Assembly (NCBI GenBank): GCA_000708835.1 | Contig: DF237361.1 | Coordinates: 18,789-82,788, forward strand | Length of the DNA: 64,000 bases | From: Klebsormidium nitens | Lineage: Eukaryota; Plantae; Klebsormidiophyceae | Direction of reading: 5' to 3' | Shown here: in pieces, positions 1-63,515 of the stretch | How the letters are laid out: each line of letters starts with the position of its first letter | Numbering within the stretch: the stretch's first letter is position 1 | Position numbers and translations under genes: made by a program | Notes under the pieces: generated by a model | Databases searched by the model: none | Seen by the model: the letters and a program-made list of their open reading frames with translations, nothing else | Told to the model about the DNA's origin: nothing

Positions 1-3000
1 CTATGCTGCCCCAGGTGAGAGCTAGAAGAATCAGAGAAGTCTTGTACACATGCATCATTTCAGATTTGCATAGCCAGGGATTTCGGAAGGAGGCAGTGGG
101 CTGTGGGTGGCGTTGCTGTACTTACTGGTCGGGCACTGGGAATCTCAGCCCCAGTCTGCGAGCTTGGTTGCTCTCGTGTTGCTAGCACTCATATCGTTTT
201 CTCCCCTCGCAAAAGTATCTCTTTTTTGTAGTGGCCGAATTTCCTCAACGTAGCGTCGCTTCCGCCTCAGGTGCTGATGTTGTACTGCGACAAGTGGGTA
301 GGTGTCCGGTCCGCTGCCGAGGCCGCTGCCACGGAGGTGGTTCGCAAGCTGAACAAGCACGCGGTCAAGGCTACCCTGCCCAGTGAGTCTGCGCTTGTTT
401 CAGTTCTCGCTTTGAGTCGTACTGCAGTGCAACCGCTGGAGACCGAGTCTTTACTTCTGTAGCTCTTCATTGACGCTTTGAGGCCGTGTTGCTGTCACGT
501 AGGAAGAGTTGGAGCTGTCGACGCCACTATGTTTTCGTACAAGACATAATCAGGCTCCATACTTTTTTTCTTTGGGCCGCAGCCGTATGCAAACCTTTGA
601 GATCTGGTCTCGAGAGCAGGTCTTGTAATCGACTATTCAAAGGCCTCAAGTTGTGAGGGTCGCTGGTAGTCTTTCTTACGCCTCCGGGGACGTTTTCTTC
701 TTCGTCCTCTCCCCACGTCTTGACCCCAGCATCTCGCTGTTGACAGTTTTCTTTGACGCCATGGAGAGCCCCAAGTTCTGGCAGGCCCAGGAGGGCAGCC
801 TGAAGCTGATTGGGCTGCTGGCCGAGACTGCGCCCGACCAGCTGCGGGCCGCCCTGCCGGAGGTGGTTCCCCGCGTGTCCAACTACGTGGCAGACGGCAA
901 GAAGCAAGTCATGGAGGCAGCATATGCAGGTACGTGCTGGCACTGCAGCCCAGTGCGACTGGATAAAAGCTTGGGTTTGTCCCTGCCGTATTGACCTCGA
1001 GATTGTTCAAAGCCACGTATGCGTGTGCAGAAGAAACATGTGCCTGCACGGACGTGCACTTCCTATGCTGATCCGCTTGCACATGAGAGTCTCCGTCTAA
1101 CGCTCTCGACCTCGGATTCTCAGCCGTTGCCACGATTGTGTGCAGCTTTGGACGCGTGCTTCAGCATCGTGGGCAACCGCGACATCGCCCACGTCATCCC
1201 GGACCTGGTCAGCTGCGTTGCGAGGCCGGGCGAGGTCCCGCAGACCGTCCACAAGCTGTCCGGAACCACGTTCGTACAGGTGGGCAGCCAGTCATTTGAA
1301 AGATTCGACCGTTTTGGGACAACCAGGTGCACCTACTGGTTTTCGCAGCCCTTTGTGTCGGCTTGCTCTCCGGCTGGCAGCAGTTGGAAAGTAAGTTTTG
1401 TTAGGTGGTATTTTGATTCCTGAGACTCTTAGGATAAGCATGTTCCTGCCTGCGGGGCTTCACCTGGGCACTTAAGGTGAAGCCCGTTCGCAAGAGAGTG
1501 GGCAATGCTCAATGCTTCCATTAGAGCTCAACCAGCGGCTTTGCTGACGTGTGGCCGTTCCTACGCAGACGGTGACGTCATCGACACTGTCGGTGCTGGT
1601 GCCGTTGCTGGTGCGGGGGCTTAAGGAGCGCACGACGCTGGACAAGCGGCGAACCGTGGTGGTCATTGAGAACATGAGCAAGCTCGTCAAGGACGCCGTT
1701 GACGCAGCGCCCTTCATCCCGCAGCTCCTTCCAGGTGGGTCCGCACTGTTTGCTTCTATCGAGAGATTACAGTTGGGCACGAAGGAATTGGCAGCTTTGT
1801 GGGACACGGAGATGTCCAAATCTGAAGCCGCTTTCGCACCGAAAGGCGTGCGAGAACGTGCTTCAACGGGTGACGTATGTCTGCTGGCTGCCGGGTAGAT
1901 CGATCGAGAGAAAAAGCAAGCTGAGCTCACCCACTGTCGATCAGTCGGTGTGTCGTCTGCGAGTACGCGGAGGTAGATTCACACGTTCTTCATCGATGCT
2001 GATTCGTCAAATCCGCCCGTCCTTTCTCCCAGGCTTGGAGAAGGTGTCCAACGAGGTGGCGGACCCCGAGTGCCGCGAGCGCGCGGGCGTGGCGCACAGC
2101 GTGCTCTTCAACATCGACAAGGAGGCCAAGGCCATCATGAACGACCCCGAGAACCAGGCGCGCAGCATCGAGCCCGCTGCCGTCATCGCCGCCCTCAAGG
2201 TCAGAACCAGGCACCGACAAACGTAGTCAGCGAAGAAAAGGACCCTTACTAAGGCTTATGCAATTGTCATTTTCAGTCTGCGGTTCCTCACACTCTTTCA
2301 GAAAGATCTCTATTCTCCAAGTCAGAAGTAGTGTCCTGGGCGAGCAAGCCGTTCTCTTCAGTGTCGAAGCGTCAAGTTGAACAATCTGTTTGCGTGCTGC
2401 TGCTCGCAGGAAGTTCTTCCCCCTGACACTGGGGCCGCTGCGCCGGACCTCTTTGCAAAGACGCTGGATTACGTGGCGGCGCTGTGTGTTCTCCTGCTCA
2501 AACACAAGTCGATCGAGTTTGAAGGTGGGCACCGATAGGCTTTTTGCACCCAACTGCTCTCTACACGCTCCTTTTTTCTCTCGCCGAGCTATTTGCCTGC
2601 ATAGATTATACGCAGTGCTGAGTCAGCACAGTCAGATTGCCCAAGTCAAAGTTCCGTCTCGACAGCTGTTCAATGGCAAGCAGCTGATGGCATGTCGAGT
2701 GTGCACGGCCATTGTTAATAGGGCGTCGGATCCTGGGGTACACCCGCGCATTCGAGTCTTGAGAAAAATTCCCATCTGACGGCTCAGGTCCCATTCTGAG
2801 AAGTGTCTTGGGCGACCGAAGTAGTTCCATGGGTCAGTATCTGGTCGTCTGAGGGAGGACTGGTCTCCCGACGCCCTCTTTGCAATCCTGGTACGCTCTT
2901 GTGAGCAGCACCTCATCCCTACGCTTTCTGCGTTCGTTGCAGAGTGGTCTGGCACGGTGAGCCCGTACCTGGCGCCGTACGTGGGCAGCATGTCGGAGGC

Positions 3001-6000
3001 GGAGAAGGCGACCCGCGCGCTGGTGAAGAAGCTGGAGGGCGAAGCGGACGACGACAGCGAGGAGGAGCAGGACGACGAGGAGGGGGAAGACCTCTGCAAC
3101 GTCAGGTTCAGGTCAGCGCAGCGCACTTTTAAAAAGTTCCCGCAGGCTGCCCCAAACATCTGGCTCTTCTAGATTCCTGGTACCACTTTGCATAGGCAGG
3201 CTAAAGGTTTTACTTGTAATGAGGAGCTGGCTCGGGTGCGAAGATATTTGGAACTACTTTGTGAACGTCAAGTATAGACCTCCTCTGGTTGCCGGACGGG
3301 TTGGTGGAGGAGTGCACTCAGAAAGACCTCCAGATGCTTTTCTCGCTGCAATGGGTAAGTCAACAGTTTCAGGGGTTCTCACTGCTACTGATACCGTATC
3401 TGCGTTGTCACGGCAGCCTGGGCTACGGTGGCAAGATCCTGCTGAACAACTCGCGGCTGCACCTGAAGCGCAACCGGCGGTACGGCCTGTGCGGGCACAA
3501 CGGGTGCGGCAAGTCGACGCTGATGAAGGCCATGGCCAACGGCAAGCTGGACGGATTCCCGCCCCCGGACGAGCTGCGGACGGTGTACGTAGCGCACGAT
3601 CTGGACGCGTCCGAAGCGGACCAGTCGGTCGTCGACCTGCTGGCGACCGACCCCCTCATCAAGGGAGTCTGTGAGTCGCCGCTCTTGTCTCGGTATTCGA
3701 GCTTTGCGTGGAGACCGGTCTGCTACGAAAGCGCTCTTTGTGAAGTTTCTCTCGTGAGCTGCCAAGGCTTGCGAGGGGGGTTGCCGTTTGCATTCGTTTG
3801 ACATACTGTGAAGCGGTATTTGGAGGTCACCGGCTGGCGAGCTTACGGTGCCCGTGCGCCACTTTTCGTCCCCTCAAGACGACATCCTCTCGACTTGCGG
3901 TGCCAGCCTCGCTGACTCGGCCTGTTTCGGTTCCGCGCAGCTCGAGAGGAGATCTGCCGAGTGCTGTCGACGATGGGCTTCGACGAGGAGCGCCAGCAGC
4001 TGACCATTGCGGCCCTGTCAGGAGGGTGGAAGATGAAGCTAGCGCTCGGGCGAGCCATGCTCATGAAGGCAGATATCTTGGTACGTATCCTCCTCCACAC
4101 TCTGCCCTACCGATTTGCATTTTGCGCATCATCTTTATTCTACGATCCATTCGATGCCCTTCGCGAGTGCCGTAGCATCCTAGGGCTGGCGTTCCTTGTG
4201 TATGTGGTGATTGCTGACGTGTCGACATGCTTGGGCCGCAGTTGTTGGACGAGCCGACGAACCACATGGACGTGACAAACGTGGCGTGGCTCGTGAACTA
4301 CTTGACGACCATCCAGGTAAAACCCCCGGATGGCCCGGAGGCGAACTCGCCCTCGAATGAAGCATTTAAAACGTTGGGTTTTGATTTAAGTTGCGTGTCA
4401 GTACGATGAAACTGACATTGCCTTAACAGCCCAAGGTCAGTGCGATAACTCTCTGTCGCATTGACATTTACGATACAAGCACCCCAGTGACCTGCCGTAG
4501 AAAGGCGGAGTGTCCAGGATATATCCAGGGGAACATCTGTCCGGGAGTGGGCTCTGGCAGACCCCCTACAATGCCCCTATCCTGGCTATGTCTGAGGCTG
4601 GTGCTGCTGTGTGTGTAGGGCGTGTCGAGCATCATCGTGAGCCACGACTCGGGCTTCCTGGACAATGTGTGCACTGACATCATCCACTACGAGAAGCGCA
4701 AGCTCGTGCGCTACAAGGGCAACCTCTCCGAGTTCGTCAAGGTCAGCACCATGCCACTTCACCGCCCCTGGCGGCCCGCTCCGCTTTAGACTCCTGGAGC
4801 GAGCGAATCTACATCGCCATTTACGTGCTTCGAGTCGGGTGCCAGCCACCTGAGAGCAAATCACCTCCTTTTAGTCGCTTGCTCGCTGTGTTGAGCAAGG
4901 GGAATGCGAGGACCAAATTTCTCTCAGCGCCTTCCATCATTGCGGGAGGCTTCTCTTTCTCTCATTAGCCCATAAGCTCATGAATTCTCTTTCCTATTGC
5001 CCCGCAGCAAAAGCCTGAGGCGCGCGCGTACTACGACCTGAACGTGGTGACGCTCAAGTTCGTGTTCCCGGCGCCAAAGGCGCTGGACGGCATCCTGCGG
5101 CGCGACATGCCCATCGTACGGCTCAAGGGCGTCGAGTTCACGTACGACAGCGCGGAGCGGCCGCAGCTGGAGGACGTGAACGTGCAGTGCAACATGGAGA
5201 GCCGGGTGGCCGTGCTGGGGGCCAATGGGGCGGGCAAGTCCACGCTCATCAAGATCCTCACCGGGCAGTTCCAGGCGCAGGTGAGCGGGCAACACTTGCT
5301 GGTGAAGTTTTGCAGGTCCCCTCCGTGCGTGTCCGACAGACCGGTTGAAACGGTGGAGGGCCGCGGGCGCTTGTATGTCATGAAATTCGAGAGTGCTGGG
5401 ATTGCAGCATGCTCCCGAGAGGCTGCGATAGTACGGCTCCTCTGCCGTAGCACGACCATCAATGTGTCAGAAGGGTGCTTAGAACCCGGCCATCTTGAAA
5501 CGAAAATAGCCACTGCAAGCGAGTGAAACGGCGGACTTTGTCTTCAAGCGGTTGGAGAGGCGGCCTTTCTTGACATTGTTGAGTCTTTGATTGTGCAGAA
5601 GGGGACGGTGTGGCGGCACCCGAACCTGGGCATTGCGTACGTGGCGCAGCACGCGTTCCACCACGTGGAGGAGCACCTGGAGATGTCGCCCAGCCAGTAC
5701 ATCTGCTGGCGCTACGAGACGGGCGAGGACAAGGAGGAAATGAACAAGGTCAGGCGCGGAGAGACGTTTCCTAGTCGCTCAGGAGGGCTGAAGCATTGCG
5801 ACGGGGCTCACGCGCATCCGCTGCCGTGCCCTTCGCTTATTGTAACGAAGCTCTTTGCACAGCGGGTCCTCGGGATTGCCATGTTAAGAGTTGAGTTTTA
5901 GAGTTAAGAATTGAGTTTCATAAAGCCACGTTAATAAGATGTTTGCTGCCTGAAAGCGGCAAGTTCTCTAGCACTTTGGCCAGATCTGGTGTACACCAAG

Positions 6001-7770
6001 TCGAAAAACACGGAGCCGAAAGCTCTGGTTCCTGTGAGGTTGGTGCTTTAAGAGCTGCGCTGACCTCCTTGTACGTGCTGACGTGCACAGGTGACGCGGC
6101 GCATCAGCAAGGAGGAGCAGCGGCAGATGGAGAAGATGGTGATCATCCGGGGGGAGAAGCGCAACGTGGAGAAGCTGGTCGGCCGCCGAAAATATAAAAA
6201 GACGTATGAGTACGAGGTCAAGGTCAGCGACAAAGCTTGCATGCGCTATACCTGGAAATACTCTTCCGGCTGCATTCCAGTTTTATACGATTGCCACGTC
6301 AATATACGGCCTTCTTTCTGTAGTACTTGCCATATCGCCAGGGCAATATTCTAGCACCCAATCTTCTAGCACCGGAGGATTGAGGAAGAGATGGCCTCTT
6401 TGTGTCGAGGGGTCTGTCCAAGCACTTTGAGCGGTAGCTCGAGCCTTCTGCTGACTGCAGTCTCAAAGAGGTCCAAAAGGAACATTGCTGCTTCCCCTGC
6501 TCTCCTTGCCTGCACGCCCCTCACTTTGTTTACGTTTTCGTGCCCAGTGGAAGGACATGCACCCGGTGCACAACGCGTGGATGACGCGCGCGATGCTGGA
6601 GGAGATGGGCTTCCAGAAGATGATCCACGAGGTGGACGCGCAGATGGTCGCCAAGCTGGGCCTCTACAACCGGCCGCTCACCATCGCCGGCGTGCAGCAG
6701 CACCTCTCCGACTTCGGCCTCGAGCCCGAGTTCGGCACCTACGGCCAGATCAAAAACCTCTCAGGTCAGCGCCGCAGGAGTTTTGAGGCAGCGAGACGGG
6801 GTTGTGTGAGTTTGGGGCCCTTGCGGTTTGTCTGTCGAGCAACTGTCCAAGGTGGTCTGAACGAATTGTGAGGGCGAAGAGACTCAGCGGGCTGATTTGC
6901 TTTGAGGAACTGAGCTTTTAGCGGACAACGTTCGCGCTGCTTCACCTACGATCCTACCGCTGCTGATATGGTAGAGGTGGAAAAAGAAGATTGAGGGAGT
7001 GCTCGAGAGGAACTGTTAGCCGCTTCTGACTCCTGGAGAGCTTGTCGTTCCGCAGGTGGACAGAAGGTGAAGGTGGTGTTGGCAGCCGCCATGTGGGCCA
7101 ACCCGCACATGTGAGCACTTCATCGGTCCCTCATTGACCCTCCTCTGCGTGCATTAGAACCTCATACCCGTAGATTTGCGTATTGTGCTGGGTTGATTCT
7201 GTACCTTACTCAGGCCCCACACAGCGCTGTCACTAATTGCTTAAAGCTTCCGTGTTGCAGGATCGTGCTGGACGAGCCCACCAACTACTTGGACCGGGAG
7301 GCCCTCGGCGCGCTGGCTTCCGCTCTCAAAGAGTACCAGGTACGGCACACTTTCGCGGCCAGCGCGCCAAAGCCTCGAAGCGAGGACTCGTGGCAATAAG
7401 GAGCCAAAAGAGCGAGGAGAAGTTGATGGCCTGCTGCAATTACCAAAAGTCTCTGCTGGCCGCAACTATTTGCAGCTTTCCGTAAAATGGCAAAGCCTTT
7501 TACACTGTTCGTTCCAGTCAAGGCTCTAGAGAAGCGTGTGCGTTCCGTTACTGATTCTCGTACCGGTTGCTTGCGCAGGGTGCGGTGGTGGTTATTTCGC
7601 ATAACCACGACTTCGTATCGTCGGTCTGTACCGAGGAGTGGCATGTCGGAGGCGGCAAAGTGATTGCGGAGGGCAACCCGGCATACGAGGCGGCAAAGGA
7701 GAAAGCAGGCAAGGAGGCGAAGAAGGCAGCGGAGAAAGCGGAGAAGGAGGCGAAAAAGGCAGCGCGATAA
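1..7770 (+). CDS. eEF3: Elongation factor 3 (eEF3/YEF3-like ABC-F ATPase), 5' end outside window. Inferred exons: <1-14, 271-382, 747-929, 1146-1279, 1569-1734, 2033-2199, 2410-2524, 2943-3111, 3417-3670, 3941-4080, 4242-4316, 4619-4741, 5008-5280, 5599-5748, 6091-6222, 6548-6764, 7056-7110, 7261-7339, 7579-7770
   Basis: HEAT-repeat N-terminus ([11 protein letters not shown]...[14 protein letters not shown]; GNRDI...TTFVQTV) and the [19 protein letters not shown] linker. ABC1 has GHNGCGKST / LSGGWKMKL / [13 protein letters not shown]2 has GANGAGKST / LSGGQKVKV / [10 protein letters not shown] with a chromodomain-like insert ([16 protein letters not shown]...NAWM). Ends in a Lys/Ala/Glu-rich tail. 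All joins are GT-AG and keep frame. Confidence 0.93.
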
Positions 7771-8843
7771 TAGCCTAGAGTGTTTTACGCCGCTATATGC
7801 TGCAGCTTTCCAAAGATGCAAGTGTCCGTGTTTTGGAGGGCACTTCCAATATGGGGTGGGGTGGGACTGATGCTTCCGAGTTCGTTAACATTCTTTGCTC
7901 CGCCAGCGCATCAAGGATACTGGGGGGCTGTTGCACGAATAATGTAGAGCTAGTAAACGCTTTCGCTGGAGACAGGTCGTTAAATCGCCCCTCCGTTGGT
8001 CCACAAATCAATAGCAGGGGCTGAGTCATCATCAGTGTCAGGTTATAAGAAATGGTTCTTTGCTAGCTTCACAATGCATACAGTAACGGCAACATAGAAA
8101 CTTGACCGCTAAGTGATTCTCATAGAACTGCAGTCGATATTGCTCCACCTTGCTTACGGTCTTCATATGAGTTATAGTTATGGGATACTGCATAGGGAAT
8201 CTCTGCGTCGCTGAAGCAGCTGAATTTGATTCATGCATGCACTTGTCTGCATGAAAGTATAGATTCTGCGCATATATATGCATGTACGGTGCCTACTATA
8301 TACTAAGCACGGCTTAAATTACTTACTTTTTAAGATGGAACCACCATGCAGACTGACATACTAAAAGCGCAACGGCGAGTACGTGCCCTGATCTCTTATT
8401 GCCGCCACATGTGCACGGCAACCTCATGCATGCATGTGCACATGCAATCAGTGACGGTAGCCCATGCAAGTGCGTTGCATGAGTACCGGCCCGAGTAGCT
8501 AGCTTTGTTTAAGGCTTGCACATGAGGCCATGAGCCAGTTCGAGCTGGCATGGTTTGTCCATGCATTGGGATGTGCGTGGGGGGCAACTCTACGCATGTA
8601 AGTAGTATGCAAACCTCAGTGCAGGACGCCTTGATGAGTCAGTTCATTATCTGAACCATGGCCTTCTGCATTTTCTTCCTTTCCTGTAAATCTAGGCACT
8701 TAATCGATGCGGCATGAGTAAAGGCGCTGGTATACTAAATCCCCAAGGCATGCAGCCCGACTATAATTGGCCCCGCAATCATGTACAGTAAGCAGCTTGC
8801 AATGACCACAGTCATGAATTCCTAACAAACGACAGACTTTGAA

Positions 8844-11800
8844 TTATAGTGCGTGTTTTCTTTCTTCCGCGACGCTGTCTCGTCTCCTATACACATGAGG
8901 TGGCGACCTCGATGAAACCCCAAAAATCGTTTCCCTCGCCCGGGGCAATTTCGGTGACTGCACATTGAACCCGTCCCTACCGTCCCGGTGCCCCGGGCCT
9001 TGAGCTTCCGCTAGCATATTCCACTTCTTGGCCTGCTTTATCAACTCGTCAGCCTCCCCGTTGAACTCGGGGTGGTCCAATATAGCAAATTTTAGTGAGG
9101 CGCACACAGAGTTGTTGATCCGCCCACCGAATCGCTCTGCGTGCCGAAGTAGCTCCCGAAAGGCGTCCATTGCCTTGGCCGCCATGCCCATCTTGGCGTA
9201 AGCGTTGATGAGCCCGTTGTACGCGTCCGAAATAAAAGGGCCTTTGAGCAGCCCCTTGCTGCGCATAGCCTGAAATGCGATCTCCGCACGGGGCACGTCC
9301 CTTGCCTGGAAAGCAGAATGAGGATCAATAGCTAGCCCAGGTTATCCCCCGTAATGACGCTATACTGAACCAAGATATTTTGTCAGATTGGACAGTTACA
9401 AGCACAGTCCAAAAACGTCTCTGTCCAACTAGCTTTGACTTTCAGCCGTTGGCCAAGTGGACTAGATCCAAAGGTTGGCAAGCTTTCGCAGCCAGAGGAA
9501 TGCGAGGAGCGCACGCGTTCTCAGCAACAGAAGTCGAAAGTCCTGTCTCGCCACCCATACTATACACGCAACTCACGGATTCCTCGATCTTTAGGAGGCC
9601 GCAGATTACGTTGTTTGGGCCATGCGCGCGGGCTCACCCTGCAGTAGAGGTGGATGAGCTCCACCATGGTGTATGCGTTCGCCTCGTACCCGTGGCTGCG
9701 CATCGCGTGCACCACGCGCTCCGCGAACTCGACCAGCCCCGCCTTGCTGAACGCGTCCAGCATCATCTGGAACACGGCCTGGTCCGGCTCGATGTTGTTG
9801 TCCTTGAGGCGCGCGTAGATGGCCATGGCGCGCCCGGGCTGCTTGCTGTTGGCGTACGCCTGGATCAGAATGGTGTACGTGTACAGCTCCGCCTTGATCC
9901 CCGCCATCTCCATGTACGTCAGCACCTGCTCCGCCTGCTTGTACAGCCCCGCCTTGGCGTACCCCGACAGCAGCGTGTGGTAGCTCGCCTGCGCAACAAG
10001 AATGGAGAGGGGGGTTCTCATCCTGAGAATTCGGAGGGGAGGCAGTCTCCGTTCCGCGACTCGCAGAGCTGTTCGTTGACAGTCGACTCGGTATTGACAT
10101 GCATAGCATTACCAGGGCTCATAATCTTTGGGAGCAGGTTGTAGCTTCGAGTCGACACAAGAGCGCGGAGGCTTAGGCCGCACTAAGAGATCTGGAGTGC
10201 CACGCAGCTTTCGCCACGCAGCTTTCGAATACGCCCAGAAAAGCCCGGAGGACTTGTTCGGACATCTGCATGACCGGCGAGTGACGTCTGCAAGGGAATG
10301 TCGGATGTCCCGAACACGAGCCTCTCTGCTGGAGCCACTGTCTGTTTCTGAACATACAAACTAAGATAGGCTATGATCATGAAAGATTAGCAAGGCGAGG
10401 CATTTTGACCTGAACTCTTTGCCTCGACGACAGAGTCCCACCCAATTCAGGACCGACCAAGGCCCACATCTTGCGATCCAGCCGTCCCGGCTCACCCTGT
10501 TCGGCCGGATGCCCTTCCGCTTCATCTCCGTGAACAGCAGAATATCCGCACGCGTATACTCGTGCGCCTTAACATACGCGTTCAGCAGCCCGTTGTAGGC
10601 CAGCAGGTCCAGCTCCAGGCCGCGGCTCTCCATGCGCTCCAGCATGCGCTGCGCCTCCGGGACCAAGCCCAGCCGCGCATAAGCGGTCAGCAAGGTCGTA
10701 TATATGCTGGCGTCCATGGCCGTGCCACTTTCTTCGGCCTCGCGGAGGAGCGCTTCTGCGCCGGCCTGGTCGCCGATGCTAGAATACATGCCGATAAGGC
10801 ACGTGTACGTGATCACGCTAGGCTGGCCGTGTGCGCGGAGCCGTGCGAGGTGCGCCTCGGCCTTTTCCACCAGCCGCTGCCTGCGGGAGCGGAATGGCGG
10901 ACCAGGTAAGCTAAGAAGAGGACGATCCCTTTTAGGTTTTAAATAAGGAGGGACTGTCTGCAGCAGCATTGGAAGCGAGCGGAGACGCTACGGGCGATCA
11001 AGAACGAGCCATGGCCGAAGTTTCTGCCGCCTTCCTTGTTGATGTTTGGGAAAGCGAGCCCAAAAAACAAAAACGAGAACTGATCAAAAATAAGCGGCGC
11101 GGGAACAAGGGGGAGGGAATCGGGCTCGATATTTGCTACTCCTTATTTTCAGGTCAAGATGCAGGTTGTTTCTGCGCTCATGTCGAGGATAAGGCGGCTT
11201 CAAGTGTTGAAAGTAGTGGCGGTAGACCCAACAGACGGGAAGTCTGCTTCAAGGAAGTGTCACATGTCTGTCGTGGAGGGTCTGTACCAAACAACCCGAT
11301 GAAGGGGCTGGGGAATTACAAACACCTTTTCCTGAACGTCAACTGAAGCAATAGTTTCGAATTGCCCAAGGCAACGTTCAATCATGGGAGGGCGCTGACC
11401 GGCAGTAGAGGTCGAGCATGGTGTTGTACGTGACCATGTCAGGAACAACTTTGCTCTCCGCCATCCGCTGCCAGAGGTCCTCCGCTTCCTGCACCATGCC
11501 ATGCTGGCCGAAGCAGTTGAGCAGGATGTTGAACGACCTCGTGTGCAGCTTGAACCCCCGCTGTGGCCGCTCGTCAAACGCCTCCATGGCCGCCTGCACG
11601 TTCCCTGACTTGCTGTATGCGTCAATCAGCAGGTTGTGCTCGTTGTCGGAACATGGGAACTGCTCGCTTGTCAGCATCCACTCGATGACCTGACGAGCAG
11701 AAAGTAGATAAATATGACCAAACGTACGGAGATGTCAGTGCGCAACGAAGACTCGCAGGCAGAGTGACTCAACGGCAGCGGCCAGAGGTCATCTGCGTTA

Positions 11801-12888: not shown

Positions 12889-13655
12889 GGCAGGCTACCT
12901 CAAAGGGAGATCTGCACTGGAAAAGGGACGTGATCAGAGAGGAAAGTTTCCCATTTTGGACCCTCAGATCGAGGGCGGAGGGATCTCATTGCAGCTTTGG
13001 TCAAAGCTGATGGATCGTGTATGAGGGTTTGGCCGCACCACCTCCAGAATTTGGTAATGGTGAGCACAAGAAAAGAGGGAGGGAGTCCAATATTTGAGAA
13101 GTACTCACACCTGTGCTGAAAGCAATCCATCGTATACAAAAAGTGGAGGCTGCTTCCAGTACCACACAACCCTCTGGAGCAGTTATTAGCCGCTTATTAC
13201 CACGCTTCAAAGGCCAAATGCCCTTTGATGTACTTGGATGCTGAGCTTTTGACTTGTCAGATGCGCGATGCCTGCTCGAAAGCGACATGTTTGCAAGTGC
13301 AGGGTGTCCAAAATGAGAGACAGTTACCTACCTCTCCAGTCCCTGCTTCAGAACTGCCAACATGCCCTAGACTCTGGGGCCTCCCCTGCAGGCGGACTGC
13401 TGCTCAAGGAACTCTGTACAACGAAGACAGCAAGGGACGACTTGCTGGACCTTCAAAATTCGTGGCTCCAGATTGTCGGGTACAGCCCTAACCCTGAGCT
13501 AAACCTCCGATTTTGCTTGGACGCGTTGCAACACAACAATTTGCAATGGCAAATGGTGACCGCATTCTCTACGAATTACATTATCTTCGCTAGCTAGTCG
13601 TTCAAGGAGTTAGAAGGCGGCTCCTTTGTCAAGGTCCGATTGCAACTTTTGCGAA

Positions 13656-13681
13656 CACTTTTTCGAACACTTTTTCGAACA
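13656..13681. repeat. 12-bp-period tandem repeat in the PPR/trhO divergent spacer
   Basis: GAACACTTTTTC twice, followed by GAAC. Confidence 0.8.
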
Positions 13682-52900: not shown

Positions 52901-54646
52901 CAAAGTGTCGACAGGCGCCAGTCCGCATGAAGAACTGGCACAGCTCCCGTTTGTCCTGCATTGGAAGGACAACCGCTCTTTCATTGGCAGGCCCTGCGTA
53001 AAACAAACAAACTCAAGTGCAGAATGCTTTACACCTGATCAAAGAGCCAACATCGGCATGTTTGTGAGAACTGACTCTTAAGACGGGCAGCAGAGTTTTG
53101 CGACCTTGGGAGCTGGATAACGAAGTTCAGATGCTGCCAACTCTCTAGTGCTGCCAACGCTCTATGTCACACTTACCGCGTCTGATTCTGCCTGAGCCAG
53201 GAGCACAGCTGTGTCTGGAAATTGGATGGGAACGTACAGCGGATTGTGTGTTGGACCGTCCTCCTGCCAAGAATCAAAATGTACTTTTGGACTCGAGTAG
53301 ATCTGTGTCTGTGTTCCTTAAGCCGAAGTTCTACTCAATTCGATCTGTGTCTCTGCTCGTCAAAACATAATGGGGAAGCAGGACATCTTTCCTTCCCTGT
53401 GCATTCCAGCAGTAAAGAGAATTCCTTGTCAGGACGGCAGGAACAAAGATCACCTATGGACGGCTTCGGTCATGAAGATGTTGTAGATACGTCACAATTC
53501 TTGCTCACCTTGATGGCAGGTTCTACCTCACTTTTCTTGACCTTCCTTTTTCTGACTGTGATCTGATTGCCCTCCCAGATGATCTCGGGAGGCCCGTCTA
53601 TCTCTTCTTCAGACTCTGTGTTGCCTGCTTGTGGTGGCTCTGCTTCTGGTGGCTCTGCCCGCTCCTTGGGCACGCTTGGAGTTGGCTCTAGCTCTTTCAC
53701 CACCTGTGCAAGTGTTGGCAAATGGGAAGAAAACTTCACGAGCATAGCCATAGCTGCCCCAAGGTCACATGGTGCCTTCAAATATGTTTCATGATTGTTA
53801 CAGCAATTGGCGATCCAATGAACGACTTCCTTTGATTGACCAGGTTGAGCAAGAAATTTTCTTAGGCCATGAAGGAACTGGGTGGACTTCATGACTCCTC
53901 TGTCAACTCCACATCCTGGAATTGATGAAAATCAGTACAGGGACAATTCCAGACCAATCATCTGGAGCACCACACAAGCAGAGACAGCAACTTGCTTGCC
54001 TTCTCCTCCTCGACAATCGAGGCAGCTTCCAGCTTCTGTGCAGTAGCGGCAGCCAGAATCCTCTCTTGCTCAAGCCACCGTGCTTCATTTTGCCTGTGCT
54101 GCTCTTCTTCCAGACGCTGTTTCTGTTCCTCTGCTGCTTGCTACACACACGAAAATGGTGGCAGTCAGGACTTCTTCTCAATTTCTAATTTTGACAGGTG
54201 ATATCTGGACAATCCTTGATCATCTGGAGGGATTAAACATGGCAGTGCTCAAGTCTCTCCTAGATATCACCGTGAACAAAAAGCAAGAAATGGCAAGGGG
54301 GGCTGAATAAATTCTAAAGAGCATTTGCAATCATCTGCTTCAATGGGCCAACTGTATGACATACCTGGTCTAGCAACCGTCTCTGGTGTAAAGGATCCTT
54401 TGCGAGGGCGTCTGCTTCCTTCTTCAGGTCCTCAGCAGCCTTGATTCTTTGCTGCTTCCTTTTTGCTTTCTTAGCAAGCCTACGTTTCTCCTTCCGTGAG
54501 ACAACCCCTCCTTGGACACCAGGTGCATTTTCAGACTCAACTTCTTCGATCGTTGGTGGCGTCCCCTCCAATCCATCGCTTTTCGTCACTGCACCACCCC
54601 CGTCATCAGACTCCGGGGCAACTCCAGGCTGTGCCAGTTGCTCCAT
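49908..54646 (-). CDS. ZRSR2: U2AF35-related splicing factor ZRSR2/RGH3 (CCCH-UHM-CCCH plus RS/RD-rich tail), multi-exon. 5' exons: 54646-54365, 54140-54000, 53704-53509
   Basis: N-terminal SRKEKRR..KKAKRKQ, GPPEIIWEGNQI and PTHNPL match the plant form. ZnF1 CQFFMRTGACRHFDKCSRKH. UHM with FEEFYDDV..EF...G and VCRNLGPHLRGNVYV. ZnF2 ends GGNCNYLHCFRNPGG. Long Arg/Ser/Asp/Glu tail. Confidence 0.92.
50915..50951. repeat. 12-bp coding tandem repeat (x3) encoding RERD in the ZRSR2 tail
   Basis: CCGGTCCCTCTC three times on the + strand, read as (RERD)n on the - strand. Confidence 0.85.
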
Positions 54647-55011
54647 TGAGCCGCTTCCTCACAATTGCTCAGCTGCTCATGACCTGCTTGCTCATCCCTC
54701 ACAGGCTCACTGCATCAGGACGCCCCTCGTTTGCCGACCTTAAGTAATAAGTCTGTTCAGAACGTCGCCCTGTTCTGAAGTCGGACCAACTTTGACAGAA
54801 TCCTTGAAGTGGTCCAGTGTTTGAGTCACCCAGTGGGCCTGAGGCCCTGAGCAGTGATCAGTCATTTTGATCGCATTCACTGGCAAGTGAGTCCTCAGAA
54901 ACTGCCTTTCAAAAGCTGGTGAAGCTAGCGCTCTGCTGCCCTACAGTATCAGGTGCAACTTTACACGAAGCAGCTGGCACTCTGCCTGGGTCAGCCAATG
55001 GGCTGGCTATA
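54647..55011. promoter_or_regulatory. Short divergent intergenic region, candidate bidirectional promoter (ZRSR2 / pseudouridine synthase-like)
   Basis: Only 365 bp separate the two inferred head-to-head ATGs. Contains a site II-like TGGGCC near 54835. Promoter function is inferred from geometry. Confidence 0.5.
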
Positions 55012-57832
55012 ATGGAAGCCATTGCGACCACCACTTTCAAGCCAATAAGTTGGCCTCATCTGAACGATGGAATGCTGTGTCTAGATGCGGTCACAAGCGG
55101 TGATGAAGGGCACGCCTTGGTCGACTTTTATACGCAGCGCTATGCCCACTCTGCTTCTGTTGTTGGCTGGAAGCTCAGAATAGAAAGAGGACAGGTCATG
55201 GTAGGCAAGGAAGTCTGCAGAGATCCCCAACAAAGATTACGGTGATTTCTCTTTTCGTGCACGACTCCTGTGGAATTTCTGGAACTTTGTAGCAAAGTCA
55301 ACAGGACAGTTTCAGATATTTCACTCGATGAGGCCTGAACTGGCTTTTGTTGAGGAAGCTTCGTAGCATTGGGCACCAAGACAGAGAATGCAAACTTGAA
55401 GACCCCGCTGAGGTGCAATAGGTTGCTCAAAAATCCCTTATAGCCCTCCTCTTATTGTCGAGCAATGAATGTTCCTTCTAAACCACGGTTCTGACGCCCC
55501 CCATTCACTCTGCAGGCAGGGGACAACACTTGAGTATCACCGATTGCCCTGGCAGGAGCCAGATGTTCCGTATGCACTGCCTGTCCTGTATGAAGACGAG
55601 CACATAGTAAGTTCCCCCTTGGCGCCCCATCTATCAGCTCAACCCTGCTTCTGATTGATTGCTTGCCTATGATCGCTGGGAGTCTTGATTAGTCCTGGCT
55701 AACCGATCCCAACAAATGTGTGTGGGGCACATGATTTCGTTCTCTGACACCTGATTTTGTTCTTTGAAGTGTTTCATTCCAACAGTTGTGCGTCAATCGG
55801 TTTCACCAGGACTTCATCACAAGCCCTGCCCAGTGGCCCCAACGGATCGTCCAGCCACATTGCCACAACCTTATAGCTGAGCTTATTCTGTCGCCGCAGT
55901 TGGCGGTGTCAAAGCCATCTGGCCTGCAAGTCCTGCCCGGCGGTCCTTTTCACCAGAGGACGGCCCTGACACTGCTGCAATGGTGGTACACAAGGGGCGG
56001 GGTAACTCCAGCCCCTGTTCATAGACTGGGACGGGGCACGTCGGGGGTGCTCCTATGCGCAAAGACGCCGCAAGCGCGAGCGGCCCTCGCAGCAGACTTT
56101 GCGGAAGTGACGATGGGCAGGTTAGGCCCACTTCTCACAGTCCTGTTGTCACAAGACCCCGGGTTCAAGCAGCAGGTTTCGCGTGCTGGAGGAGGAGTCT
56201 GGGCGTCAATTGGTGTCTATTGTTCTTCAAAAGAGACGTCTTCAGGATGACAGTCCGTTCATTTTGCTCGAGATGTGACATCGCTATGGACTTCGGCTGT
56301 GTTTTTCGTGGGAAACTTTTTATGCTTCGAAGCGGATGGCAAACAAATCTTGCACCTTCAGTTGAAGTCCCAAGAAAACTGTTCTTTTGCAGGACGAACC
56401 CAGCCCTCGAGACGGAGTCCATCATGTGTGACGGGGTGGGCCCTGTAGGGGGTCCGCTGGCGCCGTCATCAGCCTCGAAGAAGCGGATCGCCAAAACGTA
56501 CAGGGCCCTTGTACAGGGGTTGATTCCGGAGGACTATCTGGATGTAAACCAGCCCATAGGGCGAATCAAACACGGCGGCGTCAGGGGCGGCTTGCACGCA
56601 GCAAGCCCAAACGGAAAGCACTCTCGAAGTCGAATCCGCGTGATCTGGAGGGATATAGAAAAGTATGCGACGCTTGTAGAAGTTGATCTTTTCACTGGCA
56701 GGCCGCATCAGATTAGAATACATTGTGCAGCTGCGGGCTATCCTCTGGTCGGAGATCCGTTGTACATAAAAGGGGGCATCCCGGCTGAGACGCTTCAATG
56801 GGAACGGACTGCGGTTCAGGGAGGAGCAAGGGCCGAGGAAAAGTTCGAGGGCGCTGAAAGAGAAAACGAAGGGCTGGCCGCTCGTGAGTCTGGGCTGGGA
56901 ACGGATCCGAAAAAAGGCGGGGATCCGAGAACGGAGGCGCTTGAACATCGTGAGGCGGAGCGGAGAGGAGAGTCTAGTGAGCCGCGGGAGGCCATCCCTA
57001 GCCGCGACGAAGTCGAAAGAGATATTGATATGGAAGACGACGGGTGAGCTTGCGTTCGTCAGCTACAATTAGGACACCTCGCCGGTTCTTTCGCTCGCGC
57101 ATGTTGGTATGGAGGCCTCGTAAGCTGATTGGGTGTTCATACGCTGTTCAGGCAGAGTTCTGGATTGACCCCACGGTCATGCTTAGCAGGACAGCGATCC
57201 TGCTGTTGAGTTCTCCTGTGCGTCTCCGTAACGGGTCGTCTCGAGGAGCAACTTCAGCCTGCAATTCAACAGCACATACAAGCACTTTAAAGAGACGGGA
57301 AGCTGCATTCGCGTGTCCTTCGACCGTCGCTTAGCCCCCGACTCATTGCTGCAGGGGGCATAGCAAAGGGGCTTTACCCATGCCTGGAGATTGCGGATAT
57401 CTTCTTCACGCTATGCGACTGGCGTTCGATCACCCTCTCACCAACGAGGTAAGTGTCGAAGGGGAGCCGGCAGAGTGTGTGCGTAGAGTGTCTTCCTTGG
57501 GCAGAGTCTTCCTTGTGTCGACCTTCGCGTCTTCACAAAGTCGGAGGATACAACTGTTTCAAAATATGCTTCTTCCTCCTGAAGCCGGTTTCGACTTCAG
57601 TGATACAGATCCTAATACTACACGGAAGAAAGGCCAGGTTATTTCTTCCCCTTCTGTTTCTGAGTCCTTTTCTCACTCTGCCATCGTTTCGTCTCTGCAG
57701 AGACTTGTGATCGTCGCGCCTCCTCCACCATCATTATGCGCACCAGATGAAAGTCCAGAAGCGTTGCACTCTTGTCTAATCACTTCAAGTGACGACTGTA
57801 TTGCACTTTCTTTGTTGACACATTCTTCATGA
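55012..57832 (+). CDS. RluA-family RNA pseudouridine synthase-like protein (plant PUS5-type) with Gly at the catalytic Asp position. Exons: 55012-55241, 55516-55606, 55900-56120, 56393-57044, approx. 57354-57448, approx. 57700-57832
   Basis: S4-like N-terminus (WPHLNDG...FY..RY.HS...GW..RI..GQV). VLYEDEHILAVSKPSGLQVLPGG, PVHRLGRGTSGVLL, KTYRALV, LFTGRPHQIRIH.A..GYPLVGDPLY and GYLLHA.RL.F.HP. Confidence 0.9.
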
Positions 57833-58795
57833 AACGCGTTCCTTGAGGACGAAGCTAGAGTCAGATGAACATTCGACGCGCTTCGTTCACACATGGATCT
57901 GCTACATGGGTACGCGTTTCTCCGGCTGAGGGTGCCAATTTTGATCTGTGCCTCGACGTCAGATCTGACGTAAGAAGCTCCCTGAATAGCCTGCTATACC
58001 GTGGTATACTCGCAGTTACCTGTTGTTGCCCAGCGTTGCCTTTATTGTGCTCTTAGTACAACCCTCGTATTTTATTTACGAATAATGACTTAAAAAGCGA
58101 GCTAGCGAGTCCATATAAGATATAAAGGCCTTTATTGAAAGACGCCCATATATTGTGTCAATCGCGGACATGTCACAGAGCATGTGTGCGCATTCCATGG
58201 AAACGCCCTGGCCGCCCCTAGCTACCGGCGTACTCATCACATGGTAGCCCAATGTCAATCAGCAGCAATTGAGCAATTAATAACCGGCCATGGTACGTTT
58301 TTGCGGCTACCGTCTTGATGATATCATGACGCTAGCTGGCGGCAGTATACACTCAACGATCGCGGATATGTAAGCAATGCCTCATTTGCATAAGTTATAT
58401 GCTTCGTCTCTCATGAGTTTGCTGCATGACCGGCTGCACATGCCTGATACATATCTTATGTCACAGCGCGAGCTCCTGCTGAGTTGGGAAACTATGAAGA
58501 TATACTCTGTTGTCAACGCCGTAGTCACATGGACCATACAGGCTTCCATGGCATACAGATGTGAATCCACATTTGATCGGTTTCGGAGACCTAGCTATCA
58601 ACAAGACGATTCAGTGCATGCCTCAAGCTGCACGTGGTGGAATGACATTCAGTAAGTCCGCAGTACTCATAGATCTTTAATGAGGTCGCAGGCACGACTG
58701 ATGGCCCCGACCGCGGGTGCCGACTTCTTCATTCCCGCAAGCGGCAATAAATCCGAAGTTTCAGAACTTCAAAGCTTCCGCAGAACATGCCGCTT

Positions 58796-60621
58796 TCAGG
58801 ATTGTTTTCGGCCCAACAGCTTTTCCAACCTCCTAGCCCAACTCTGACCTTGAGGGTTCAATACAAATCGACGTGGCCGTTTGTCAGAGTATGTCTCATC
58901 CGTTGCAGCATCCTCTTCTAAGTCATCCTCGTCAGAATCGTCGTCACTAATGTCAGCAACTTGTCTGCTTGACGTTGCTGTTGGTAGACGCGACGAGCTT
59001 TCGAGCACCGGTTCCGAATTTTGCAACAACTGGGCTAGCTCGCTCACCGAAATCACTTGGTCACCAGGTTGTGAAGGGGCCATGTCTATGTGGATGTCTA
59101 GATGTTCTTCAGGAAGATTGTTCCCAAGACACTCAGGCCATTCGATGAGGCTGATGGCTGCAATATAAGGACAACAACAAACATTTGAGACTCCATCCAA
59201 CTTGGAACATCCAATCATCCATTATTCAACTCGTGTATGGTCTGAAGGGAGAGAAAGGCCATCCGAGAAATGCACAGAAACAGGCAGAGAAACAGGCATA
59301 ACCGTGCACTCGAAGGTACACTCGAAGACAGGTTCGAACCTTTACGATTCCTCAGGAAGTCGAGCTTGCAAAATAGGAGGGTGCTGTGCAATTCATGAAG
59401 CGATCTGCGGATTTTCCAACCACGTGCAGACATCTTACCAGTCTTATAAGACTCCTCCATGCCCAGCCGCTCGAAATTCTCAGTTGGTCCAGTCAATCTA
59501 TACAAATCGAAATGATGCACAGGCCTGCGAGGCCACGAGATTGATGGTCAGCAAGCAGCAGTGCCCAGTACAAGCGCCTTGCAGTAAGGCTCTGGACAAC
59601 CAATGGAATGCACAAAGAGAATGCAATTTACACCAGTTGATAAGACTCCGATACGAAATGACTTTGCCACAAGGCTGTTGATCAACTTTCATGCAAGAAG
59701 CGCAGCCACGTCGCCGTGCATTTGATTATAGTTCGGAACCTGCGAACGACAGGCAGGACTTACGTTCCAGGATGATCTTCATAGACTTGCTGAAGAAGAA
59801 ACGTGGGGGAAGGCACGACCAGGTTCGCATCAGCTGCCACTGCTCGTATGAACGCCCGACTGCAGAACAGAGGGAGCATGTCTGATTAATGGACTGTCAC
59901 ATGTGCTGACCTTCGTATCCTTCTGACTTAGAATCAACTTCAGTTGCGTCTGTCTGCAAGCAGCACTCTGACACATCCACAAAGAAGGAGAAGCCACAAG
60001 GGAGATGCGGGCGAAACGCGGGGAAGAGGGGGCATACCTGAAGACACTTTTGCCAGCTCCGACCTGGCCGTAGAGGCAGATCACATCTCCAGGATTTGAC
60101 ACTTGCACAAGGAGCTGCGCCAAGAGGCCAGTTTCATCTTCCCCACTGGACACAAACGTGACGCCTGCGGGCGCCAGTGGTGGGCTTGGCGCCACGCCCC
60201 CTGTTGGAGCACAGTCTCTCAACATTGCCCTACTTGCAAAGCACCTACTTCTAGCCTGGGCCGGTGCGCCTGCTGCAATCTCAAAAGTCCTGATCAAAGG
60301 GGCTTTGCCGCGTGTTGTTGGAGACAAGCAGCTCTGTTCCAACAATGAAGTTGGATCTGGCTGCTGTCCCAAATGTCCGTATGCCCTGATCAGTGGCAGA
60401 TGGGCCACCCCAGTAAACAAACCAAAAGGTGCTGTGTGCAGATGTCCACAGAAGGTTGCTCTTGTTGAGAGTGACGGCGAGGTGGTGGTAGTACACTTCA
60501 TTCCCACCGCATCTTCCGAAGCAAATCTGGCGCGCAAAAACTCGTAAGGACAGAGAACACTAAGGAATGCTTGTTGAGAAACAAGAGCTGATCTTAACAA
60601 CAAGCTGCGTTGAAGAAACAT
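58796..60621 (-). CDS. tsaE: TsaE (YjeE) tRNA t6A-biosynthesis P-loop ATPase with long N-terminal transit-peptide-like extension. Exons: 60621 (or ATG 60501)-60038, 59859-59764, 59524-59439, 59157-58796
   Basis: GDVICLYGQVGAGKSVFSRAFIR (Walker A), VPSPTFLLQQVY, PVHHFDLYRL and AISLIEWPE are the four TsaE signature blocks. They are joined by frame-consistent GT-AG introns. Confidence 0.9.
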
Positions 60622-61011
60622 GAGAAAAGCGCCTGCAAATCTGAGCACCTCCAGGATAAGCAGCACACCTTGCGCGTTCTTGATCAATTGATCGAAGTTT
60701 CTGCTACTAACCGGAGTCGTCAAACAAAAATAACGAATCAAGAAGTTCCGTGTTCCCTATAGAGAGTTGAAAGCGTAACGGAAACCGTCGCAATCGGTCC
60801 AATCGGTCGAGAGCCCCAGTGCCACCACACGGAGCCCAGAACCGGCACGCCTACGGGACTACGGTACTGTTAAACCGTGATCAGAATCGAAGGCTCCCTT
60901 GGTTAGTCGAGGTTTTGTGCACATGGTTTGAAGCACCTCGTCCAACCTCGCATTGCTCGTGCAGGCAACTGGCGCCACATTCTGATCAGCAAGCTGGCAC
61001 CTGGCAGCACG
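60622..61011. promoter_or_regulatory. Short divergent intergenic region, candidate bidirectional promoter (tsaE / CbbY)
   Basis: About 390 bp separate the head-to-head ATGs. A tandem CAATCGGT / CCAATCGGT (CCAAT-like) lies near 60791-60807. Confidence 0.5.
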
Positions 61012-63515
61012 ATGGCGTCCGCAGCGTGCATCGCCCGCCACTCCTCCTTTTTGGGCTCCCCTCTTTCCCGAGAGATCAGACAGCTTGCCAGCTTCAATTC
61101 CTTTCAAGCGACGCCCTTGCCTTTCTCTCCGCCTCATGCATCTCAAACTCAATGCCGTAAGAGTGGGAGCTCCGGGCATAGCTTGACGCCCAGCAGATAC
61201 TCGATTCAATTAGGAAAGCTCCCTGCATTGCCACTGCAAAGACTGAGTGTGGAGTCGCAAAAGGCCAACAGGACAAAATGTGCCGCAGCTCAGGAGAATG
61301 CAGGGGGCTCAGATGGGATGCCAGCTGCTCTGCTGTTTGACTGCGATGGTAAGAGCGTTTTTCTTTCTGTTCAAGTGGTCTATTCTTTCCTTTGGTGGTC
61401 TGCTCTAGCTGGAGACGAGTCCGCCTCTCATGGCAGGTAGAAAGGAGAAGGGGCAGAACATCTCTGTAAACTTTGGTACTATCTATTTAGAACCTACACA
61501 GTTTCAAAGCCCAACCAAATTTGTGTTCCAACAACTTGTAATGCAGGTGTGCTAGTGGATACTGAACGCGACGGTCACCGCATTGCTTTCAATGAGACGT
61601 TCAAAGAGGTGAGCAAGACAGCCTTACTTTATGGACCTCTCCTATTCGCAAGAAGTGCACAGCACGCTGCTTATCAGTTCCTTACCTTTCTAAGATGCAT
61701 CTACTGCAGCAAAGAGCAGCTTAGGTCTGGCACGCTTACTGACTTGAGTGCCTATGTTGCTCAGAAAGGTCTTCAAGAAGACTGGGATGTGCAGACATAT
61801 GGCAAGCTCCTGGAGATTGGGGGGGGAAAGGAGAGGTGAGTAGTTCTTTCTGCACTTCAGTCTTATTGAAGTCTAGACTCCTTGCCTGTTCAGCTTTGAG
61901 CCTAGGCCCACTTGCGTTTCACTTACGAGCCAAAACAACCTCCTCACTTGTCAGTCGGGGCCTGTGCCTGTTACTGGAAATACACTGGAGTATACATGCC
62001 ACCTCATCATGTCCCTAGATTGTTGTAATGCACGTCCCAATGCCAGGAGTATGCCTTGCTGGGGCTAAGAAAAGCCAGATCAGATTGTTTCAATTGACAA
62101 AAACCCGCTTTGCAGGATGACTCATCACTTTAACGAGGTCGGGTGGCCGTCTCAAATCCCCAGCGATGAGCAGGGGCGCAAGGACTTCGTTGCAGGAACG
62201 CATAAACGGAAGACTGAGATCTTCATGAAGATGGTCGAGAGCGGCGCCATGCCCCTCCGGCCAGGCGTTGCCAGGTGAGAGGCCGTTGCTGCGGCAGTAC
62301 AGGACCGAAGTACGATCGATTGTGCGGGCCAGATGCATTGGTGTTTACCGTGAGATAGGCTGCTCGTGGACCTCCATACTAGGGGCATGGTGAGAGGCTC
62401 CCCTTCTGTACGCATTACAGATCATTTTTGCCTATTCTATCCTACAACAGAATAAGCGCTGGGTTTCGAGACCTTGATTCTTCCAGTCCCAACATCTTTT
62501 GCCGTCACTCTCTACGCTCTCTGCAGCAATCTTCCCAATATCATCCTCAACACCCTCTCCGTCTATTACAGGCTGGTGGACGAAGCGTTTGCTGCAGGGG
62601 TGCCCGTTGCAGTCTGCAGCACGTCCAACGAGAAAGCGGTCTCGGCCATCGTGCGGGTGATGTTGGGTGAGGAGCGGGCTGCCAAAATCCGCATCTTCGC
62701 CGGTGATGTTGTGCCCAAGAAGAAGCCAAACCCCGCCATCTACAACCTGGCTGCCAAAGAGTTGAACGTGGACCCCACTAGGTTGGTGCCCTTTGCAAAT
62801 TGGTCTTTTATGGCTCGTTCTTTTAAGCTTAATCAATGTTTCCTTCCCGTCTTTTCTGCTTTAAGGACGTAACTTCAGCTCAAATGGGACTTCATCGAAG
62901 GTGGCTTGTTAGGTTTCAACTACTGTATCGGACAGCCAGAATAAGCAGCTGCACCAATGTCATGTGAGTTTTATCCGAACACTGTCTGATCATCACTCTT
63001 CCGCTTTCTGCAAGGGCAGCAATCTCCCTGATTTATGAGTTGCCGTACGTGTCGAACACTCCAATACTTAGAATCTGCCTCTCTTGCAGGTGTGTTGTGG
63101 TCGAGGACAGTTTCATTGGCTTGTCAGCTGCCAAGGCTGCGGGGATGACCTGCGTTGTCACAAAGAGCGTGTAAGTCCATTCCCCTCTCTCGGGTCCTTG
63201 ATTTGCTTCCACTTTTTCCTGAAGAAGGCCCTACTGAGAGCGACGAGTAGTTTCATGATCTGAAGCATGGGGAGTGTACATAAACAACGCGTTTCGCTGA
63301 GGAGGTCTTGCCGTGCTGTATTGTCATGTCGCTTTGCTAAGATTTTGTCATGTAGACAATCGACAAAGAGGTTGACGTTTCCATTACCTTCAAGGTACAC
63401 TCAAGCGGAGGACTTCACGAAAGCAGATGCGGTGTATGAGAGCATCGGCGATACCCCCAGCGAAAACTTCGGGCTTCAAGACTTAGCAAAGCTCTGCTCG
63501 CGAGCCCTTGCATGA
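61012..63515 (+). CDS. CBBY: CbbY-type HAD phosphatase (xylulose-1,5-bisphosphate phosphatase-like) with plastid transit peptide. Exons: 61012-61348, 61547-61608, 61765-61835, 62116-62274, 62572-62781, 63090-63170, 63395-63515
   Basis: ALLFDCDGVLVDTERDGHRIAFN, YGKLLEIGGGKERM, LRPGV, VAVCSTSNEKAV, FAGDVVPKKKPNPAIY and CVVVEDS.IGL.AAKAAGM. Ser/Ala-rich N-terminus. Confidence 0.93.

Follow-up and report, generated by a model that had tools for sequence, protein, structure and literature searches.

In brown algae, neighboring genes tend to lie on opposite strands, strongly so in Ectocarpus. According to passages of two preprints on these algae (bioRxiv 10.1101/2024.02.19.579948; bioRxiv 10.1101/2020.03.09.980763), 61.7% of the Ectocarpus genes are found in divergent pairs, other Ectocarpales have > 60% alternating pairs, and the close divergent pairs of Ectocarpus have short spacers and one common nucleosome-depleted region, yet are regulated independently. 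Gene pairs with bidirectional promoters make up about 10% of human gene pairs (PMC2194621), and the unidirectional blocks of dinoflagellates (PMC8110479) represent the opposite rule, with long same-strand runs and rare switch points. For Klebsormidium, no mention of gene orientation was found in the literature searched, and the genome paper is silent on it. Here we analyzed a stretch of the Klebsormidium nitens genome (assembly GCA_000708835.1, contig DF237361.1, positions 18,789-82,788), which comprises the final 64 kb of its scaffold and is termed the window below. Its fifteen loci are unrelated genes that point right and left in turn.

As far as the passages on Ectocarpus go, the window resembles that alga in combining opposite-strand neighbors with a genome that is not tiny, and in its short divergent spacers. 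It differs in extent, since 14 of 14 junctions switch strand here and 8 of 9 in a relative, both in local runs only, against about 60-62% reported for Ectocarpus and other brown algae, and in taxonomy, Klebsormidium being a streptophyte green alga and not a brown alga. As in bidirectional-promoter pairs, the start codons lie close together, at distances of 0.64-1.09 kb in six of the seven head-to-head spacers, but whereas such pairs concern a minority of human genes, every gene of the window belongs to a head-to-head pair. With the dinoflagellate blocks, the layout would share the character of a genome-scale rule on gene orientation; unlike them, the window contains no same-strand run of independent genes.

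Strand alternation in the window

A preliminary description of this DNA, made from the sequence, had claimed strict alternation of fifteen loci, namely eEF3 (+), PPR (-), trhO (+), O-FucT (-), a bestrophin-type (VCCN) relic (+), SDR (-), REP (+), PARN (-), sigma-adaptin (+), PPRD (-), a Kelch gene (+), a ZRSR2-like gene (-), PUS (+), TsaE (-), and a HAD hydrolase (+). We checked the strands by Pfam scans of stop-free exons, by GenBank gene calls, or by both, and every strand agreed. The GenBank calls covered window positions 18.5-64 kb, and the strands within 1-18,550 rest on Pfam and exon evidence. The exons of spliced models were left unjoined and domain searches were performed exon by exon; GenBank gene ranges extend from start codon to stop codon, PARN for example ending at its ATG at 37,918. 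The 14 switches at 14 junctions have a probability of 6.1e-5 at p = 0.5, in line with the value of about 6e-5 given before. The alternation of gene direction in the window is confirmed, and against a 50% expectation the layout is not due to chance.

The perfect run requires that a pseudogene fragment be counted and an annotated 103-amino-acid (aa) gene be dropped, which raises the question of a counting artefact: without the relic, O-FucT and SDR both lie on the minus strand, and with the 103-aa model PPRD gains a same-strand neighbor. When only intact genes were counted, leaving out the relic, 12 of 13 junctions switched (P = 1.7e-3), and with the 103-aa model included 14 of 15 (P = 4.9e-4), so that even the least favorable counts are unlikely at p = 0.5. 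Moreover, both counting decisions have support of their own, as described in the following.

The relic (23,431-24,264, plus strand) consists of the last two exons only and was recognized by exon homology to a distant relative, represented by contig Ga0590115_0001279 (84.9 kb, of which about 58 kb were walked) of JGI metagenome 3300060285. There the order is O-FucT (-), an intact Bestrophin_2 gene (+), SDR (-), and REP (+). The last exon of the relic (24,025-24,228) shares 53% identity over 68 aa with the last exon of the relative's gene (E = 2e-20), and the penultimate exon (23,431-23,576) has 81% nucleotide identity to its counterpart. In K. nitens, the penultimate exon carries insertions of 5 and 7 nucleotides, which put about 20 codons out of frame, and the body of the Bestrophin_2 domain has no counterpart anywhere in the window. 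The relic therefore combines homology to a functional gene with the loss of essential parts and a disrupted frame, as is characteristic of a pseudogene. Since an intact plus-strand gene sits at the matching position in the distant relative, the plus-strand position of the relic is ancestral. The earlier assignment as a plus-strand VCCN relic that fills the apparent break between O-FucT and SDR was thus correct, and the same-strand adjacency of these two intact genes arose through decay of the intervening plus-strand bestrophin gene.

GenBank also models a plus-strand spliced gene over the relic, at 23,576-24,264 and with 78 aa. By its length and the available GT..AG sites, this model would begin with the ATG at 23,576 and continue, after splicing, in the last exon. 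An intact small gene at this place is ruled out by the missing domain body and the frameshifts. The two insertions together restore the frame and keep the open reading frame (ORF) open, although a conserved membrane segment is scrambled over about 20 codons, and the splice sites flanking the penultimate exon are still canonical.

The 103-aa GenBank model (44,088-45,597, minus strand) has no domain. No other extra model exists from REP to PUS, as the accessions GAQ88243 to GAQ88250 leave six between them. The stop codon of the 103-aa model precedes the PPRD ATG by 55 bp. In its exon 1, the guanine-cytosine (GC) content by codon position is 0.71/0.64/0.50 compared to about 0.62/0.44/0.75 in real exons, and this exon is built on a 49-nucleotide direct repeat. 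In a close relative, represented by contigs of Logan run SRR23617307 with 70-90% nucleotide identity, the model shows no conservation at the protein level, only short non-coding similarity islands. Furthermore, no CATG island (≥ 8 CATG per 400 bp, the window mean being 2.1) is present between the model and PPRD. For these reasons we judged that the 103-aa model is not an independent gene; it probably belongs to the PPRD transcript as its spliced 5′ leader. With neither coding signature nor conservation nor room for a terminator of its own on the one hand, and an intact plus-strand gene at the position of the relic in the distant relative as well as a plus-strand spliced GenBank model there on the other, a mere counting artefact appears very improbable.

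The copies of the 49-nucleotide repeat are located at 45,080-45,128 and 45,520-45,568, 440 bp apart, and have the palindromic core GGGGCGCAGAAGCGCCCC; no further copy was found in the window. A 26-nucleotide block upstream of PPRD (44,391-44,416) is 100% identical in the close relative (13,653-13,678), the surroundings being unalignable; it could act in regulation or else represent a conserved upstream ORF.

Missed genes in the spacers had been named as what would break the alternation. Scans for tRNA and Rfam families revealed no gene in the window, the ten longest spacer ORFs had no Pfam match, and the only two spacer ORFs with a coding signature and a plausible role both immediately precede trhO, on its strand. 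The one formal break is the minus-strand 103-aa GenBank model. An ORF of 199 aa at 7,288-7,884 (-) was rejected as a gene, as it runs antisense to the repetitive sequence that encodes the Lys/Glu/Ala-rich C-terminal tail of eEF3.

Gene order and rearrangements in related algae

The switch counts cover the K. nitens window and about 70 kb of the relatives. The close relative is colinear with the window, with unchanged orientations, over 8.8-21.3 kb and 28.5-51.1 kb, and the spacers are mostly unalignable between the two. Beyond the 3′ end of PPR, it has an F-box gene instead of eEF3, which still converges on PPR. In the distant relative, the order is eEF3 (+), trhO (-), PPR (+), O-FucT (-), VCCN (+), SDR (-), REP (+), AcsF-like (-), UGDH (-), and PARN (+), corresponding to 8 strand switches at 9 junctions. 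The head-to-head pair PPR-trhO is inverted as a unit in this species, between conserved flanks, and both breakpoints of the inversion fall in tail-to-tail spacers. Alternation survives an inversion only when the number of genes inverted is even. Considering both relatives, 5 of the 6 adjacencies that are absent from K. nitens still switch strand.

The lone same-strand adjacency of the distant relative is that of UGDH and the AcsF-like (Rubrerythrin-domain) gene, which are separated by a gap of 3.3 kb (local coordinates 10,355-13,644). In this single pair, the gap is about three times as long as a normal spacer; the neighboring head-to-head spacer measures about 1.4 kb, and those of the window 0.6-1.1 kb. 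Pfam gave no match for any of ten ORFs in the gap, taken from both strands. The gap may hide a decayed or orphan gene, like the O-FucT/SDR gap of K. nitens.

Pair synteny in other charophytes had been proposed as a check. The close relative is colinear and PPR-trhO is flipped as a unit in the distant one, whereas the PARN-adaptin pair is broken in the latter.

These comparisons also bear on the strictness of the alternation, which had been called unusual. The description holds only against p = 0.5; against an Ectocarpus-like frequency of 62-65%, a few perfect windows are expected genome-wide. The run could therefore be a chance product of a moderate bias with about 60-65% opposite-strand neighbors, noticed through scanning of every window. 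At 65%, a run of 14 switches has a probability of 0.65^14 = 0.0024, so that some 1,600 windows would include about four perfect ones, and the proportions in Ectocarpus and the other Ectocarpales provide a precedent for a bias of this size. Nevertheless, we regard this explanation as rather unlikely. Five of the six adjacencies in the relatives that were not selected for alternation switch strand, the inversion of the PPR-trhO pair preserves the pattern, and at the single place where intact genes of the window adjoin on one strand, a gene between them has decayed. In addition, CATG islands mark the junction type, none of them occurring outside tail-to-tail spacers (see below).

Spacer composition and a proposed layout of shared modules

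The spacers between the coding ranges measure 638-1,214 bp, with the exception of 1,932 bp between PPRD and the Kelch gene. The preliminary description had further claimed that the convergent spacers are of distinct composition, and this was borne out by lower GC content, more palindromic hexamers, and CATG islands in six of seven. The GC content is 0.44-0.52 in tail-to-tail and 0.50-0.53 in head-to-head spacers. Palindromic hexamers are enriched with z = 2.7-3.9 in six of the seven tail-to-tail spacers and in two of the seven head-to-head spacers. At equal total length, the tail-to-tail spacers contain 99 CATG and 32 CATGCA/TGCATG motifs, the head-to-head spacers 23 and 7, respectively. Exactly six CATG islands are present in the window, all within tail-to-tail spacers. 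As these spacers represent 11% of the sequence, the location of six of six islands there would occur by chance with a probability of about 2e-6. CATG islands are also found at tail-to-tail junctions in both relatives, and the passages of the Ectocarpus papers make no mention of such CATG-rich palindromic islands.

The eEF3-PPR spacer (7,771-8,843; GC content 0.47, palindromic hexamers z = 3.8) has its island at 8,101-8,901, with 17 CATG per 400 bp. The islands of the other tail-to-tail spacers are located at 16,801-17,301 between trhO and O-FucT (spacer 16,743-17,902), at 32,701-33,101 between REP and PARN (32,293-33,143), at 40,901-41,501 between sigma-adaptin and PPRD (40,778-41,499), at 49,201-49,901 between the Kelch gene and the 831-aa ZRSR2-like gene (48,694-49,907), and at 58,101-58,601 between PUS and TsaE (57,711-58,795). 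At the REP-PARN junction, a CATG island is present at the matching junction in both relatives. The tail-to-tail spacer between the relic and SDR (24,265-25,260) has no island, and its palindromic hexamers have z = -0.6. At the scaffold end, the next spacer begins (63,516-64,000); within these 485 bp, CATG occurs six times and TGCATG/CATGCA four times. The islands are rich in TGCATG/CATGCA, GCATGC, and ATGCAT. From their sequence, they may be a strand-symmetric 3′-end, poly(A), or termination signal.

The head-to-head spacers are located between PPR and trhO (12,889-13,949), O-FucT and the relic (22,645-23,430), SDR and REP (27,657-28,550), PARN and sigma-adaptin (37,919-38,556, 638 bp), PPRD and the Kelch gene, the ZRSR2-like gene and PUS (54,647-55,468), and TsaE and the HAD gene (60,226-61,317). 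The part of the PPR-trhO spacer at 12,966-13,892 is unalignable with the close relative, and the interval corresponding to O-FucT-relic spans several kb in the distant relative and contains the front of the intact bestrophin gene. The ATG-to-ATG distances are 638, 786, 822, 894, 1,061, and 1,092 bp, with PPRD-Kelch reaching 1,932 bp. Should the 103-aa model prove to be the leader of PPRD, the head-to-head core of this last spacer (45,598-45,964) amounts to 367 bp, measured from the ATG of the model. The earlier reading of the window as divergent pairs with short spacing stands, with distances of 0.64-1.09 kb between start codons, two of them above 1 kb, and 1,932 or 367 bp for PPRD-Kelch. Transcription start sites must be closer than the start codons, because they lie inside these distances; head-to-head start sites are accordingly no more than 1 kb apart, as is presumed also for the two spacers just above 1 kb. 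The CpG observed/expected ratio is about 0.67 (0.48-0.78) in head-to-head spacers versus about 0.9 (0.70-1.04) in tail-to-tail spacers. The former are thus the more CpG-depleted, the reverse of the CpG-island promoter picture.

With moderate confidence, we propose that the alternation is the local view of a layout common to Klebsormidium and its relatives, in which strand-symmetric modules shared by neighboring genes are under selection. The unit of this layout would be a head-to-head pair with start codons less than about 1.1 kb apart, and the pairs would be joined tail to tail via spacers of about 0.7-1.2 kb with CATG/TGCATG-rich palindromic islands. Each gene would share a bidirectional promoter region with one neighbor and a palindromic 3′-end/termination zone with the other. 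At a same-strand junction, a terminator would have to be placed directly against a promoter, leaving the downstream promoter open to read-through, so that selection would remove the rearrangements that create such junctions, while moves or flips of whole pairs would survive.

The same features could also reflect DNA torsion, i.e., an alternation that is real and selected but driven by divergent starts reinforcing each other via negative supercoiling, and by convergent ends gathering positive supercoils that are relieved at palindrome-rich zones. Supercoiling-mediated coupling of neighboring genes according to their orientation has been modelled and reported (PMC4154641, PMC11722375), and the tail-to-tail spacers are indeed rich in palindromes. 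However, no sequence feature separates torsion from shared modules, and the close divergent pairs of Ectocarpus are, in the passages cited above, independently regulated despite their common nucleosome-depleted region. We consider torsion as the driver to be quite improbable.

Several points weigh against the layout of shared modules proposed here. The window was selected for alternating, and therefore a genome-wide frequency cannot be derived from it. With p = 0.62-0.65, about 2-4 perfect 64-kb windows per genome are predicted. The minus-strand 103-aa GenBank model formally interrupts the run. The PARN-adaptin pair is not kept, PARN being paired with UGDH in the distant relative, which means that head-to-head pairs are not inviolable units. 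Finally, the promoter and terminator functions that neighbors would share are deduced from the composition and arrangement of the spacers.

In a stronger form of this proposal, which we put forward tentatively and hold to be less likely than not, alternation would be a near-obligate rule throughout the genomes of Klebsormidium and its relatives, with about 85-95% opposite-strand neighbors, two types of strand-symmetric modules (shared promoters and 3′-end zones with CATG/TGCATG palindromes), the head-to-head pair as the preferred unit of rearrangement, and tandem junctions resulting mainly from the death of an intervening gene. Such a rule would by far surpass the bias of brown algae, where the proportion is roughly 60%.

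Genes of the window and significance of the layout

The window begins within an eEF3-type ABC-F gene (1-7,770, plus strand, cut at the window start), which has ABC_tran matches on the exons 3,265-3,798 and 4,984-5,523. Its C-terminal exon encodes the Lys/Glu/Ala-rich tail, contains a 33-bp tandem repeat at 7,698-7,764 within it, and ends with the stop codon at 7,768-7,770. The orthologue in the distant relative shows 85-100% identity in tblastx segments. The PPR protein gene (8,844-12,888, minus strand) has PPR family matches on four minus-strand exons, and its first exon (12,043-12,888) is kept in the close relative. The matches to a PPR exon were confined to distant PPR proteins and to fragments from relatives, the latter with 78-87% identity. 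In a search for K. nitens paralogues, none of the ten best full-length matches came from this species. The trhO-like rhodanese gene (UPF0176; 13,950-16,742, plus strand) has Rhodanese and Rhodanese_C matches, and colinear ORFs in both relatives carry UPF0176_N. Its start is uncertain, with an ATG at 13,268 and another near 13,950 as candidates; the ORF 13,253-13,594 had no Pfam match. The O-fucosyltransferase family gene (17,903-22,644, minus strand, 703 aa) is a GenBank call with PF10250 and has O-FucT matches on three exons. Assuming locus tags that increase in steps of ten, it is preceded on the scaffold by seven models, three of which were found in the window.

Both Pfam matches and GenBank calls support the short-chain dehydrogenase (SDR) gene (25,261-27,656, minus strand, 275 aa), the Rab escort protein (REP)/GDI-family gene (28,551-32,292, plus strand, 680 aa, GAQ88243.1), and the gene for a PARN-like CAF1-family ribonuclease (33,144-37,918, minus strand, 1001 aa). 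The GenBank locus surrounding GAQ88243.1 matches positions 18,551-42,292 of the window with 100% identity. The adaptor-complex sigma subunit gene (38,557-40,777, plus strand, 163 aa) has Clat_adaptor_s on the GenBank product. The polyprenol-reductase-type Steroid_dh gene (PPRD; 41,500-44,032, minus strand, 321 aa) is a GenBank call whose first exon opens with the ATG at 44,032. It is followed by the Kelch-repeat gene, which is nitrile-specifier-protein-5-like (45,965-48,693, plus strand, 329 aa; Pfam and GenBank).

The ZRSR2/U2AF35-like gene (49,908-54,646, minus strand, 831 aa) is a GenBank call without Pfam match. Motifs read from its minus-strand exons include a CCCH finger at 52,881-52,940 (CQFFMRTGACRHFDKCSRKH) and a U2AF-homology-like motif, which make the earlier ZRSR2 label plausible despite the missing Pfam match. 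Colinear minus-strand ORFs are present in the close relative. The last exon codes for 466 aa and is of low complexity. The last three genes are again supported by Pfam matches and GenBank calls and encode an RluA-type pseudouridine synthase (PUS; 55,469-57,710, plus strand, 318 aa, KFL_004120180), a TsaE-domain protein (58,796-60,225, minus strand, 243 aa), and a HAD-superfamily (CbbY-like) hydrolase (61,318-63,515, plus strand, 244 aa). Upstream of its annotated ATG, the TsaE frame continues for another 177 codons without a stop (60,226-60,756, minus strand) and without a coding signature; the annotated ATG may or may not be the true start.

The layout of Klebsormidium may represent an alternating organization of the Ectocarpus type, possibly in a stronger variant. 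If the rule holds genome-wide, it would be the strictest alternating layout described, in a genome of about 100 Mb from a close algal relative of land plants. In that case, Klebsormidium would provide a natural system to study why same-strand junctions are disfavored, how two-sided promoters and terminators are, and which grammar governs rearrangements. Strand alternation and CATG islands would also be strong priors for gene finding in Klebsormidium-type algae. They would help to recognize small models that are spurious, the 103-aa model being an example, and, wherever a same-strand gap appears, to detect decayed genes like the VCCN relic.

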